Positions 56,061-60,859 of a DNA stretch of 64,000 nucleotides are shown in pieces. The stretch covers positions 50,784 through 114,783 of the forward strand of contig DF237225.1 of the NCBI GenBank assembly GCA_000708835.1, in the 5' to 3' direction. Under the pieces are notes generated by a model, which had not been told where the DNA came from, made no database searches, and saw nothing but the letters and a program-made list of their open reading frames with translations. Position numbers and translations under genes: made by a program. The stretch comes from Klebsormidium nitens. Lineage: Eukaryota > Plantae > Klebsormidiophyceae. Within the stretch, counting starts at the first letter, position 1. Each line of letters begins with the position of its first letter.

Positions 56061-56605
56061 GGCTGAGTCGGGAGCCGCAATGATACCACCATCGATTAAC
56101 TCTCTTGGTGGTTGTAATTGTATGAAAGCAGGGCACAGAACTGCCCGACCAGCAGTTCTGGAAGCTTACTCGAACTCGGTACTCTAAGGCTTAGCATAAT
56201 ATAGAAAGGAAGAGCGACGCCACGTAAGCAGGATAAGCCGGGAGCAGAAGTTCTTGCATGTGTTAGGCATGTCCTGGGCTCGGATTTTCACCGCCGAAGC
56301 GTTGCGGAACTGTTTGCGGAAAGCGCGGAAACCATGGCGGAGAAGAGCGGAATGCGCGGAGCAAGGCAAAAGCTTGCGGTCCAAGCTTGGATGAAAGAAG
56401 AAGCACGCAAGTTGCAAGTCGTGGAAGCATCATTGGACACAAGCTAATGCGCAGTTTCGTGCAAAAGTAATTACGCGACAAAGTCAGGCCTCGTCGGCGC
56501 TCATGCGCAAGCGCAAGTCTTGAATATAAGAAAGATTGAACTGAGCACGTAAAGATTATTTTCAGTCCCTTTCACAAATGCCACCACATCTCCATAAGCC
56601 ACAGA

Positions 56606-59600
56606 CTATCTAGGCGTAACAAACCTCGAAGCAACCAACACCGTGCTCTGATTGTTCGCAAGTACGTTGGAGGACGAGCTCAGGCTACCCACTAACGGAG
56701 ACGATCCCTCCGAATCCCACAAATCTTCCTCTCTGAAACTCGAATCAACAACTTGTACCAGCGCCAGTTGCGAACCCACGCTTTCCATATTTGGTCTGGC
56801 AGAGGGGTCCGTTCGCAAGCAAGCCAGAGCCACATGAATGTAGTTCCGGGCTTCGTTCACGTCATAATCATTCCCAAGTTTTGGGTCGACCAGCTCCAAT
56901 ATCTTGCCCTCCCTGGTCATGTCTACGGCGATCTTGGAAAGGCGCTCCATTACTCCGGACCTGATCTGGCTCACCACCGGACGCCCGCTCACGAGCTCCA
57001 GGAAGAGCATGCCAAAACTGTACACGTCGCACTTGGGGGTCAAGAAACTCGCCCCACCATGCAGGTACTCTGGGGCCATGTATGGCACCGTCCCCTTGAC
57101 CATGGTAGAAGTCTTCCATCCCGAGTCCTGGACTAAGTGTGCGAGCCCAAAGTCGGCAATGCACGCATTCGCTATCTCGTCATCAGTAAGCAGAACGTTG
57201 GCAGCCTTGATATCCCGATGCACGATGGGTGGCCGGATGTCGTTGTGGAGGTAAATCAGCCCTCTGCAGACGCCGCGCGCAATGTTGATACGGTCAGCCC
57301 ATGACAACACCGGCTCCCCATCTCTCGGATCGTGAAGGCGTCTGTCCAGGCTCCCCCGAACAAAGTGCTCGAACACCAACAGTCTCTCCCCCCTATCCAC
57401 GCACACTCCCAGGAGAGGCACAAGGTTCTTGTGCCGGACCTTGCCAAGAGCCTCGACCTCCGCTTTCCAGGACCTCTCTTCGATGTCTTTGCGGCCAGGC
57501 CTTGACTCCAACCGTTTCACAGCGATGACCGACCCGTCCTCGAGGACACCCTTGTACACGATTCCAAACGACCCCCTTCCAATGATGTTGGTGCCGTTGA
57601 AGCTGTCAGTGCCCTTTTGCAGTTGCTTGAGAGTAAAATGCTCCTGACGAGGTTTGGAGACCGGGTGCTGGGGTGTTGTTTTCCCTAGCGTTTCGTCCTT
57701 GCCCCCTTCCTCCAATGTTGACTGTAGGCTTGACCTACGTTTCTTTTGCCGGTACAGGCAGAATAAGCTCAGGGCTGCAAGGGCCAGAAGAAGAGCTGCT
57801 CCAGCAAGAACCCCGCCTATGACGGGGCCAATAGTACCAGCAGAATCGGGTGTTGCCAAGGCTGCAATGGTTGCACGAGATCAAAAGACATGAGCCACAC
57901 CTGCTGGAGTTTTGCCAAGAATTTCTTAAAGAAAACCTTGTACAACCTCGCCTGAGCAGGCGCCCAGTCAAGTCTTCCATCAGGAGAGGCAAAGGATAGA
58001 AGGTGGCGACTTAGACCAGAACTCGGGTTTTTGCAAACAATTAACATAGTTCTAGCTCTTACATAAGCACAAAGATGCTGCTCTTACCCGGAGCAGGCCC
58101 TGGGATAGGGGCAATAGCAGGGGCAATTGGGCGGGCTGTCCCTGCAAGCACGAGCGAAGCACGACTTACATGTGGTGTGTTACAGGCATATGGAAGTGCT
58201 CATTCCCTCGGATCTCGTGAATTTCAATCAAAGAGGAGCGCTCGAGCAGTGTTGTGCGCTGTCTCTGTGACTAGGTCATAAGGGCTGATGACGCTAGAGC
58301 ACCTTCTTACCCGTGACTGCAACAAGGTTACAGTAATTTAATTCTCAAACGCAGGTCCCATTTTAGGAGTCCAGCAGGATTCTTCAGGAGACTTCGCTAG
58401 GTCACTTGACTCACACATAAGAGCCCAAGACAAGCCCACGCAAAGGAATAGCCGTTTACCTTCTGTAACAAAAACATTGCCAATAACCGGCCCATTCCCC
58501 TCCTGAGTCAAGGACGTGAAGACCAAGGTTGTGGCGGACGCGGTCGCCACGAAGTCAAACACCTTAGGCAGGTAGCCCATCTGCTCCACAGTCGTATTGG
58601 TGATGTCAAAAGTGTAGTTCTGGGTGGCCCCGGCCTTCGAGACCTGGAGCGTTTTGATGGGAGAGCCGGTAGGAGTGCCCGCCAGGTAGAAAGACACGGT
58701 GTAAGAGGACCCAGGCGTTGTGACAAAATTCTGAAAAGACAGAGGGACAAGGGTTCAGTGGTCTACATGTCCGGCCTTCAAGTACTCAACAAAAACTGCG
58801 GCTCTGGAAGCAGACAGAGAGTGACCAGATTTTTGGCTCCAAAAGCGACCGGTTCTTAACTTTTCTCCTATTCACAAGCCTAGTATGACAAACTTTATTT
58901 CCTGCCAGGGAAACTCGCTTCAAAGCTTCTAACTTTGAACCAATGCAGGCAGATCGTCCGAGGAAGTATGGCAACTCCTTGATCTTACACTGACCAAAGC
59001 GATGGCGCTCTCAGCCACTTACCACTGGTTTCCCCCCGACCATCAGACAAGCGAGTGACCGACTCTGTTCCAACTGCTTGTAACAGAGGAGAAGCTTTCA
59101 GACTCTTTGTGTGTCTATGAGAGTCTGTCTTTTTGCCACAGAATTTATGGCAATTGATGGCAATCCAAGAACCGAAGGAACCCATACTAACAGTGCTCGC
59201 AAGTGACTGACCTGCTGAATGGACCCTGCCTCGTTTCCGGAGCAGTCGAGGCTGTACGAGGCACCAGGAGGCGCTTGCCATTGCCTCGCAGAAACATAGT
59301 CAACGGTCCCAGCAGTAATAACCCAGCCAGGAATGACGTCACGTGAGCTGAACGTTGCGTAGCCGCCGGAGTTTAGAGCAGAAAACCCGGGGAGGGCAAA
59401 GTCACCATTTGTGAAGGTAGGATCTGGAGAGGAGCACGGAAGATAAGTAAAGAAAACCAAACAATTGATAATCTGGTGGGGCACTTACAAGGGGGGTTGC
59501 CCTAACCAACTCAAAAGCTTGAAAAAAGCTCCGAAAAATTCCAAGGATTCATCAATGCACCAAGCCCTCCTGCCCAAATTCCGGAATCTTCAACTGCCGG

Positions 59601-60859
59601 CAGTGGTCAAATACGTTGAATGAAAACAAAATGCACAGGCTGCTGGCTTCCTTCCTGTCGAACTTTCCGGAACATGTTTCTCATCATCGGCTTTGGATGG
59701 GTGCTTCCAATCCCCATGGGACATGAGGGATGTCCCTCCACACCAACAGATTACAATTACACAGTAAAGACAAAGGCGGCATATGGGTATGACTGCAACA
59801 GCTCCTGTCACATTTTGCCTCACCAAGTCAAGGGGTTCCCTAAGAGTCAATGTTGGACCTTTTGAACGGCCACGGCCTCAGAGTGCAAGGACTACCTCTT
59901 TCTTCCCGTAGAAAGCTGGTACTTCTCAACCAATGTTCCTAATTCACACAAATGTGACACAAATCTGCTCAACTTAAGTCCATGAGGGCCCCAAATGCTT
60001 CTTGAATAACCTACCGCCGCTTTCCTGAATCTCTCTTTCAGGACCATATGCCTAGAAAGTATGTGCAGGTACTTGCTTCAACACACTTTCCCACCTTATA
60101 ATAGGGTCCGTTCTCCAAGATGTGACCTTCCCTGGACTGATGCATTAAATGCAGTTCACAACTTTCAGATCCTCCTGATCAAAACACCAACTTGTACCTT
60201 TCTTAACCCAATGTATTCAAGTTTGACATCTCTTTAACCGCAGGGACAGAGAAGTGAGTCATGTCTGTGCACGAGAATGCCAACTTTCATTAGTGTCGTC
60301 CCAGTCTTCGCCCCAGGGCTGTCATGGCTCCCGCTGCTAATGGCTATCCTATCTGCTGCACCAAAAAGCCATAATTGAGCTTTTCAAGAGACCTGGACAA
60401 CTAAAGGACGCCAGGATAGGGAACTTACTTGCAATCTGGAGAAGTGACCTGGGGGCAGCAACTGCATGCACATATAAACTGTATTTAACAGAGAATCCAC
60501 ATTCCTTGAGAAGCGGTTTAAATCCCTCACAGGCGGATTTTCTTTTCTGCTTGTCACCCACGATCAGCCAACAATGCGGAAGGGAATTTAGGTAAGATGG
60601 GGCATTTTTTTTTGGATATTTTCAGTCACCTAACACTCTTGCAATCTATTCAATCCTGCCAGATCAAACACATTCAACCTGGTAAAGCTGTGTGTGATCA
60701 TTATGAGGCCCTCACTACAGCGTCAGATACAAACATATGCAGCTCCTCCTCATCACTAGGGTGAGGATTCGTGGCTGTCTGGAGATCTAGCTGCCAAGGC
60801 CACTTACCTGAGGAGCAGACAAGCGCCAGGAGTAATAAAAGTGCAGTGAAGACTGCCAT
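56606..60859 (-). CDS. Receptor-like kinase (RLK/Pelle, RD type): signal peptide, DUF642/choice-of-anchor-C-like ectodomain, Pro/Ala stalk, transmembrane helix, kinase; exons 60859-60808, 59423-59212, 58730-58460, 58141-58088, 57861-56606
   Basis: Signal peptide MAVFTALLLLLALVCSS. Ectodomain NGDF...IPGWVITAGTVDY...WQA..SLD..G.EAGSIQQ.F.TTPG..YTVSFYLAG.P.G.PIKTL. TM VIGGVLAGAALLLALAALSLFCLY followed by RQKKRR. Kinase motifs GRGSFG, VAVK-like IAVK, HRDIKAAN, DFG and APE are intact. Phases 1,0,1,1 are consistent; extra exons in the first intron cannot be excluded. Confidence 0.92.

Follow-up and report, generated by a model that had tools for sequence, protein, structure and literature searches.

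A receptor-like kinase gene of Klebsormidium nitens with an ectodomain of the DUF642/choice-of-anchor C type

The DUF642 proteins described in spermatophytes carry two tandem domains within about 370 amino acids, are secreted, are encoded by three exons and have neither a transmembrane helix nor a kinase; they are recognized by the motifs NGxFExxP and CGPVxD (PMC6651502). Reported partners of these proteins are wall polysaccharides and pectin methylesterases (PMC6651502, PMC13516882), and the family has been called exclusive to spermatophytes (PMC6651502). The ectodomains listed for the receptor-like kinases (RLKs) of the alga Klebsormidium are only of the leucine-rich repeat (LRR), Pro-rich, extensin and C-Lec types (PMC10868138). 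The subject of this report is a six-exon gene of Klebsormidium nitens on the minus strand, at 60859-56606 of a window of 64,000 nucleotides (contig DF237225.1, positions 50,784 to 114,783). Its product, P0001, consists of a signal peptide, one DUF642 domain, a Pro/Ala stalk, a single transmembrane helix and an RD kinase of the RLK/Pelle family, in this order.

The combination of DUF642 with a kinase has been described in other plants. In 2025, DUF642 was placed among the unclassified RLKs and receptor-like proteins of ferns, and a DUF642-kinase of Taxus chinensis (A0AA38CBH3) was pointed to in InterPro (PMC12512272). No fern or Taxus protein of this kind was present among the 120 listed relatives of the P0001 kinase or among the best 150 of the 4,214 relatives of its domain. 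P0001 itself, found by a search with the kinase open reading frame (ORF), is named 'DUF642 containing protein kinase superfamily protein [Klebsormidium nitens]' in NCBI and UniRef and lies on a 115-kb scaffold. The architecture is thus already annotated in the public record, but it is not discussed there, and a literature search returned no searchable paper containing both 'DUF642' and 'Klebsormidium'. A first-pass annotation of the window, made by a model from the sequence, had supposed that DUF642 is not catalogued as an RLK ectodomain. This is correct for the list in PMC10868138, from which the domain is absent, but not for the record as a whole, given the name of P0001 in NCBI, a paralog (P0008) in the same alga and the fern and Taxus proteins (PMC12512272). 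Taken by itself, the gene encodes an annotated but unstudied receptor kinase.

The reading that we favour, and consider probable, is that P0001 is an ordinary, expressed member of the RLK repertoire of K. nitens, including the proposed binding of glycans by its ectodomain and the shuffling of ectodomains within the lineage. The expressed gene and its paralog show that the list of Klebsormidium ectodomains (PMC10868138) and the view of DUF642 as confined to spermatophytes (PMC6651502) are incomplete.

Gene structure, transcripts and protein architecture

The joined coding sequence (CDS) of the six exons is 1,878 nt long and encodes a protein of 625 amino acids, which is the same as the database protein P0001 at 625 of 625 residues. 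All five introns of the reconstructed CDS have GT-AG borders, and their phases are 1,1,0,1,1, so that the DUF642 module is flanked by phase-1 introns and is divided by a phase-0 intron. The positions given by the first-pass annotation for the two domain exons (59423-59212 and 58730-58460), the start codon (60859) and the end of the kinase ORF (56606) agree with this CDS. Its description of the module as bounded by phase-1 introns and its order of signal peptide, DUF642 domain, stalk, transmembrane helix and RD kinase are likewise borne out, the latter by Pfam scores and sequence motifs. Its exon structure was right for the domain and kinase exons and wrong in one respect: the second exon of 33 nt, between the signal peptide and the domain, had been overlooked.

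At least half of the window's sampled words are contained in 18 public runs from six studies, four of which (X1, X15, X19 and X20) were examined. The contigs of these four runs omit exactly the five introns, which read CT..AC on the plus strand, and the joints seen are 60808/60461, 60429/59423, 59212/58730, 58460/58141 and 58088/57861. In run X1 the depth is about 400 in the exons and 2-27 in the introns, and the depth across the joints (376-434) is about equal to that of the exons. Exons 3-4-5 are chained in a single contig of X19 (record 17) and exons 4-5-6 in a single contig of X15 (record 9). The DUF642 exons are therefore joined to the kinase exon in the mRNA, a connection that the first-pass annotation had named in advance as a test of its gene model. 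The joint between stalk and kinase (57861/58088) is present in X1 and X15, and the intron preceding the stalk exon is removed in all four runs. The contigs of X1 and X19 extend to 56490-56495 in the 3' untranslated region (UTR), and at the other end the transcript runs on upstream of 60950 as 5' UTR.

Intron 5 (57862-58087) is kept in one X20 contig; in X1 its depth is 27, compared with about 446 in the exon. A stop codon follows after 8 codons in the retaining form, which would yield a secreted DUF642 protein without transmembrane helix or kinase. This form is minor and probably reflects splicing noise.

The retaining contig is one of two observations in favour of a different explanation of the gene model, in which a DUF642 gene and a kinase gene were misjoined into a chimera or misannotated as one, or in which the domain represents bacterial contamination. 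The other is that the closest algal homolog of the domain, on contigs L001 and L004, has no kinase within 9.3 kb downstream. The single contigs that link exons 4-5-6 (X15) and 3-4-5 (X19) contradict a misjoining, as does the depth of the joints compared with that of the retained intron in X1. Contamination is at odds with the spliceosomal intron inside the domain and with the 115-kb algal scaffold. Explanations of this type are thus highly improbable, and the spliced contigs led to their rejection.

The domain is matched by both of the profiles whose use the first-pass annotation had proposed as a check. The Pfam profile (PF04862) scores 69.4 bits with the whole protein and 73.8 bits with residues 28-190, covering profile positions 3-156 of 157, and lies well above its gathering cut-off of 27; with the joined DUF642 exons the E-values range from 4e-19 to 2e-20. 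The choice-of-anchor C profile (TIGR04362) scores 113.5 bits (E 1e-32, profile positions 3-157 of 157), and this part of the check came out below the curated cut-off of 120. There is a single DUF642 stretch in P0001, and it is followed by the transmembrane helix, a hydrophobic stretch of 27 residues upstream of the kinase with RQKKRR after it, and by the kinase, which scores 151 bits with Pkinase and 138 bits with PK_Tyr_Ser-Thr. The catalytic motifs GRGSFG, VIAVKRL, VHRDIKAAN, ADFG and YMAPE read from the sequence are complete and are those of an RD kinase. The layout of P0001 is that of the RLK/Pelle family: a signal peptide, an ectodomain, one transmembrane helix and a kinase with GxGxxG, the VAIK Lys, HRD, DFG and APE. 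A pseudokinase was considered and is ruled out, all catalytic motifs being present. The features of the gene are collected in Table 1.

Table 1. Exons and 3' end of the P0001 gene in the window, and the closest homolog of its DUF642 exons
Feature	Position	Strand	Basis or remark
Exon 1: signal peptide (MAVFTALLLLLALVCSS) including the start codon; phase 1 at its end	60808..60859	-	CDS identical to P0001; joint 60808/60461 in X1, X15, X19
Exon 2: mini-exon of 33 nt, 11 aa (VAAPRSLLQIA); phase 1 to 1	60429..60461	-	Spliced contigs, CDS
Exon 3: N-terminal half of DUF642, profile 3-70; starts in phase 1, ends in phase 0	59212..59423	-	Pfam and NCBIfam; joints on both sides
Exon 4: C-terminal half of DUF642, profile 72-156; ends in phase 1	58460..58730	-	Pfam and NCBIfam; joints
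Exon 5: Pro/Ala-rich stalk (GTARPIAPAIAPIPGPAP), 54 nt; phase 1 to 1	58088..58141	-	Spliced contigs, CDS
Exon 6: transmembrane helix (IGPVIGGVLAGAALLLALAALSLFCLY), then RQKKRR, juxtamembrane region, RD kinase (residues 299-572), Ser-rich tail, stop	56606..57861	-	Pkinase/PK_Tyr_Ser-Thr, motifs
3' UTR to poly(A) site near 56455	56455..56605	-	X20 contig ends at 56455; its loose end is a T-run (+ strand)
Nearest homolog of DUF642 exons 3 and 4	L001:6217-7277 (= L004:10217-11277)		Identity 72% with exon 3 and 64% with exon 4

Relatives of the ectodomain and of the kinase

A HMMER search of 1.84 billion representatives with the ectodomain returned 4,214 relatives at E <= 0.001. Among the best 150 of these, none has a kinase domain (0/150), and those that could be checked are bacterial, with identities of 38-51%; the one exception is P0179/P0272 (L001/L004), the only algal match among them, a fragment on a metagenome contig of a related alga. 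The named relatives are 'choice-of-anchor C' proteins of bacteria or of metagenome-assembled genomes, including Alpha- and Gammaproteobacteria, and 20 of the 57 short relatives carry a PEP-CTERM-like tail. The best single-domain match, P0153, is 51% identical and has kin in Sphingomonadaceae, other Alphaproteobacteria, Kitasatospora and Streptomyces; over its full length the ectodomain is 38-44% identical to loci of Kitasatospora, Streptomyces and Alphaproteobacteria. When a profile of the two-domain relatives was used, the 120 matches listed were bacterial choice-of-anchor C proteins only, with no plant DUF642 among them. A word-index search with the ectodomain region matched only P0001 itself, and no close relative turned up when viral contigs were scanned for the ectodomain. 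A Nucleocytoviricota cluster of about 1,000 amino acids with PAN, DUF642 and WSC domains, found in the Atlas search, resembles the ectodomain in structure (template modelling score, TM, 0.78).

Two other algal genes carry the same module. The paralog P0008 of K. nitens (636 amino acids), returned by the kinase ORF search that also gave P0001, has the same order of DUF642 domain, stalk, transmembrane helix and kinase as P0001 and scores 94.1 bits with TIGR04362. It differs from P0001 in its ectodomain (39% identical) and in its kinase (56% identical). The P0008 gene has an intron after 'IQQ', as in the P0001 gene, with a GC donor, and phase-1 flanks. Its annotated model (L003:1801-2004 and upstream) begins with 'MAAD' and has no signal peptide, and the contig ends 1.25 kb upstream. 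The phase-1 acceptor of the DUF642 exon points to exons further upstream that this model probably lacks. The second gene, the homolog on L001, agrees with P0001 in its acceptor, in the phase-0 intron that follows 'IQQ' and in its phase-1 donor; no kinase was found within the 9.3 kb downstream of it on L001/L004. The ORFs downstream on L001 are rich in N-glycosylation sites and Pro/Thr repeats. The same module is here part of a different gene. The positions and phases (1-0-1) of the introns of the module are thus common to at least three algal genes, P0001, P0008 and the L001 homolog, at identities of 39-72%. This conservation indicates that the module had its introns before the three genes diverged.

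A pair of acidic residues distinguishes these copies. The Glu of NGxFE and the Asp of GPxxD covary in the family: both are present in 52 of 58 sequences, and five of the other six have lost both. The two residues appear to belong to a single site, which may hold a structural metal, as many jelly rolls of carbohydrate-binding modules (CBMs) do. In P0001 the corresponding residues, 38 and 183, encoded by exons 3 and 4, are Ala and Gly. Ala and Gly also occupy the two positions in the translation of the L001 homolog. P0008, in contrast to P0001, keeps the pair. As both residues are lost, the site is probably absent from P0001, and any metal or contact site that the pair makes is probably absent from its closest algal relative as well.

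The first-pass annotation had seen a closer resemblance to bacterial choice-of-anchor C domains than to the DUF642 wall proteins of land plants, and the profile scores and matches agree: TIGR04362 scores 113.5 bits compared with 74 bits for Pfam DUF642, and the checkable relatives among the best 150 of the 4,214 are bacterial. These observations, together with the identities of up to 51% to P0153 and of 38-44% to the Kitasatospora, Streptomyces and alphaproteobacterial loci, would also be expected if the domain had come from bacteria by horizontal transfer into the Klebsormidium lineage or an early streptophyte, had gained introns there and had been shuffled onto the kinase and other genes. 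The distribution in eukaryotes would be patchy if the wall proteins of the family were exclusive to spermatophytes (PMC6651502). A structure search of the Atlas ranks bacterial choice-of-anchor C proteins first (TM 0.88-0.91, compared with 0.84 for streptophyte DUF642). The Atlas feature search, however, ranks streptophyte DUF642 clusters first (0.96), and the same scores would also result if the spermatophyte family had diverged more quickly from a common ancestor. A tree of 59 DUF642 domains does not favour transfer either, as it is an unresolved star in which the algal copies are neither united nor separated; within it P0001 pairs with the L001 homolog (SH-aLRT 99) and P0008 stands on a long branch. 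This was a quick tree without plant, fern or other algal DUF642 sequences. In addition, the phase-0 intron and the phase-1 flanks are conserved in three diverged algal genes, so that any transfer would have been old and single. A literature search on DUF642 and horizontal gene transfer found nothing relevant. The data can be accommodated by a transfer long ago as well as by vertical inheritance with rapid change in the seed plants, and we regard transfer as possible but on the whole unlikely.

A more extended version of the transfer is doubtful. It supposes that an early streptophyte or klebsormidiophyte took up the module once from bacteria of soil or fresh water, that the module gained introns and spread as a mobile phase-1 cassette to RLK kinases, to giant wall proteins and to channel-like proteins of Klebsormidium, and that it became the ancestor of the DUF642 pectin regulators of seed plants. 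If true, it would overturn the view of DUF642 as exclusive to spermatophytes.

The history of the kinase is that of a family specific to the lineage. Outside Klebsormidium, its best relatives are plant RLKs (LRR-VIII-2, PERK, CRK and CrRLK1L) at 35-45% identity. In a tree of 31 kinase domains, the Klebsormidium-type kinases form one clade (support 100/100), which joins the land-plant CRK/LRR-VIII-2/CRPK1 group (DLSV) with support 82/87. The P0001 kinase groups with those of two LRR-RLKs, P0003 and P0005 (100/99), and apart from that of the DUF642-RLK P0008, which lies elsewhere in the Klebsormidium clade. From the transmembrane helix onward, P0001 and P0003 are 68% identical, and their upstream parts are unrelated. 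The grouping of the P0001 kinase with LRR-RLKs and the start of the P0003 homology at the transmembrane helix indicate that ectodomains were exchanged within a lineage-specific expansion of kinases. The coding sequence of P0003 (L005:1262-3250) is uninterrupted between the start codon and residue 663, compared with five introns in the P0001 gene. A simple swap with the LRR paralogs at a shared intron was considered and is unsupported, as P0003 is intronless at the boundary between ectodomain and transmembrane helix.

Predicted fold and likely function

An AlphaFold2 model of the ectodomain, built with 58 aligned sequences, is all-beta with 11 strands (pLDDT 94.3, pTM 0.90). Its Foldseek matches comprise CBM61 (with galactotriose), CBM4-2, CBM16, CBM35, a porphyran-binding CBM and the HpiC1 cyclases, with E-values of 1e-7 to 1e-5, TM 0.55-0.64 and identities of 11-16%. 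A beta-jelly roll of the CBM kind (galactose-binding-like) is thus the high-confidence prediction for the ectodomain. Judged by this fold and by analogy, the most likely role of P0001 would be that of a glycan- or wall-sensing receptor.

In the proposed mechanism, the predicted ectodomain would bind a polysaccharide or glycoconjugate, either of the algal wall or of microbes on the wall. Binding or clustering would then be relayed across the membrane to the kinase, as in the wall-sensing or lectin-type RLKs. As to its origin, the receptor would have arisen inside the algal lineage, when an intron-bearing DUF642 module bounded by phase-1 introns was shuffled onto a unit of transmembrane helix and kinase.

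The ligand could come from either of two sources. P0001 may sense glycans of microbial surfaces or bacterial exopolysaccharides, as a pattern-recognition receptor, rather than the wall of the alga itself. Its ectodomain is of a type that bacteria show on their own surface, the CBM-like fold fits modules for diverse glycans, and its kinase clade is nearest to the land-plant kinases of the LRR-VIII-2, CRK and CRPK1 types (DLSV). Many kinases of these types act in biotic stress. The spermatophyte DUF642 proteins, however, are reported to act on the pectin status of the plant itself (PMC13516882), and a role in sensing microbes instead of the own wall appears improbable.

Several points weigh against an expressed, glycan-sensing receptor assembled by shuffling within the lineage. 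The signal peptide and the transmembrane helix were assigned by eye from the sequence and not by a topology predictor. The runs are Logan contigs whose status as RNA was guessed, and it is the splice joints and the ratio of exon to intron depth that argue for RNA. The jelly roll also occurs in proteins that are not lectins, such as the HpiC1 cyclases and the Cry toxin domains found with Foldseek, and a sequence search of the PDB returned no solved relative of the ectodomain. To our knowledge, no ligand is known for any bacterial-type DUF642 domain. Finally, P0003 has no intron at the boundary where the exchange would have taken place, so that the ectodomain swap may have gone in either direction and by more than one mechanism.

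If the ectodomain of P0001 binds a wall polymer, this streptophyte alga, which lives on land surfaces, would possess an early and independent receptor of the wall-sensing type. The large family of bacterial choice-of-anchor C proteins would gain its first ligand as well.

Comparison with known systems

P0001 shares with the bacterial choice-of-anchor C proteins (TIGR04362) the full-length domain and its conserved core of W, D, W, S-D, Q, Y, K, M and G-P. It is unlike them in what follows the domain, which is a stalk, a transmembrane helix and a eukaryotic kinase instead of a PEP-CTERM signal or another prokaryotic anchor. It also differs in having spliceosomal introns and in the loss of the Glu/Asp pair.

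With the spermatophyte wall proteins BIIDXI, TEEBE, DGR2 and OsDFOT1, P0001 has in common the Pfam family and a secreted or extracellular location of the domain. In place of the spermatophyte signature it has NGDFALPG and NGPVIGN, in which Glu is changed to Ala, Cys to Asn and Asp to Gly, and it therefore falls outside that family as defined by its motifs. The fern and Taxus DUF642-kinases (PMC12512272), known here by description only, combine the same pair of Pfam domains with each other in one protein as P0001 does.

The general plan of P0001 is that of RLKs with carbohydrate-binding ectodomains. The malectin-containing CrRLK1L proteins, the LRR-VIII-2 proteins with malectin, the lectin RLKs and the WAKs, like P0001, place a beta-sandwich of the sugar-binding type outside the cell and an RLK/Pelle kinase inside. 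The difference lies in the family of the ectodomain, which is DUF642 in P0001 and malectin, legume-lectin, B-lectin or EGF in those receptors.

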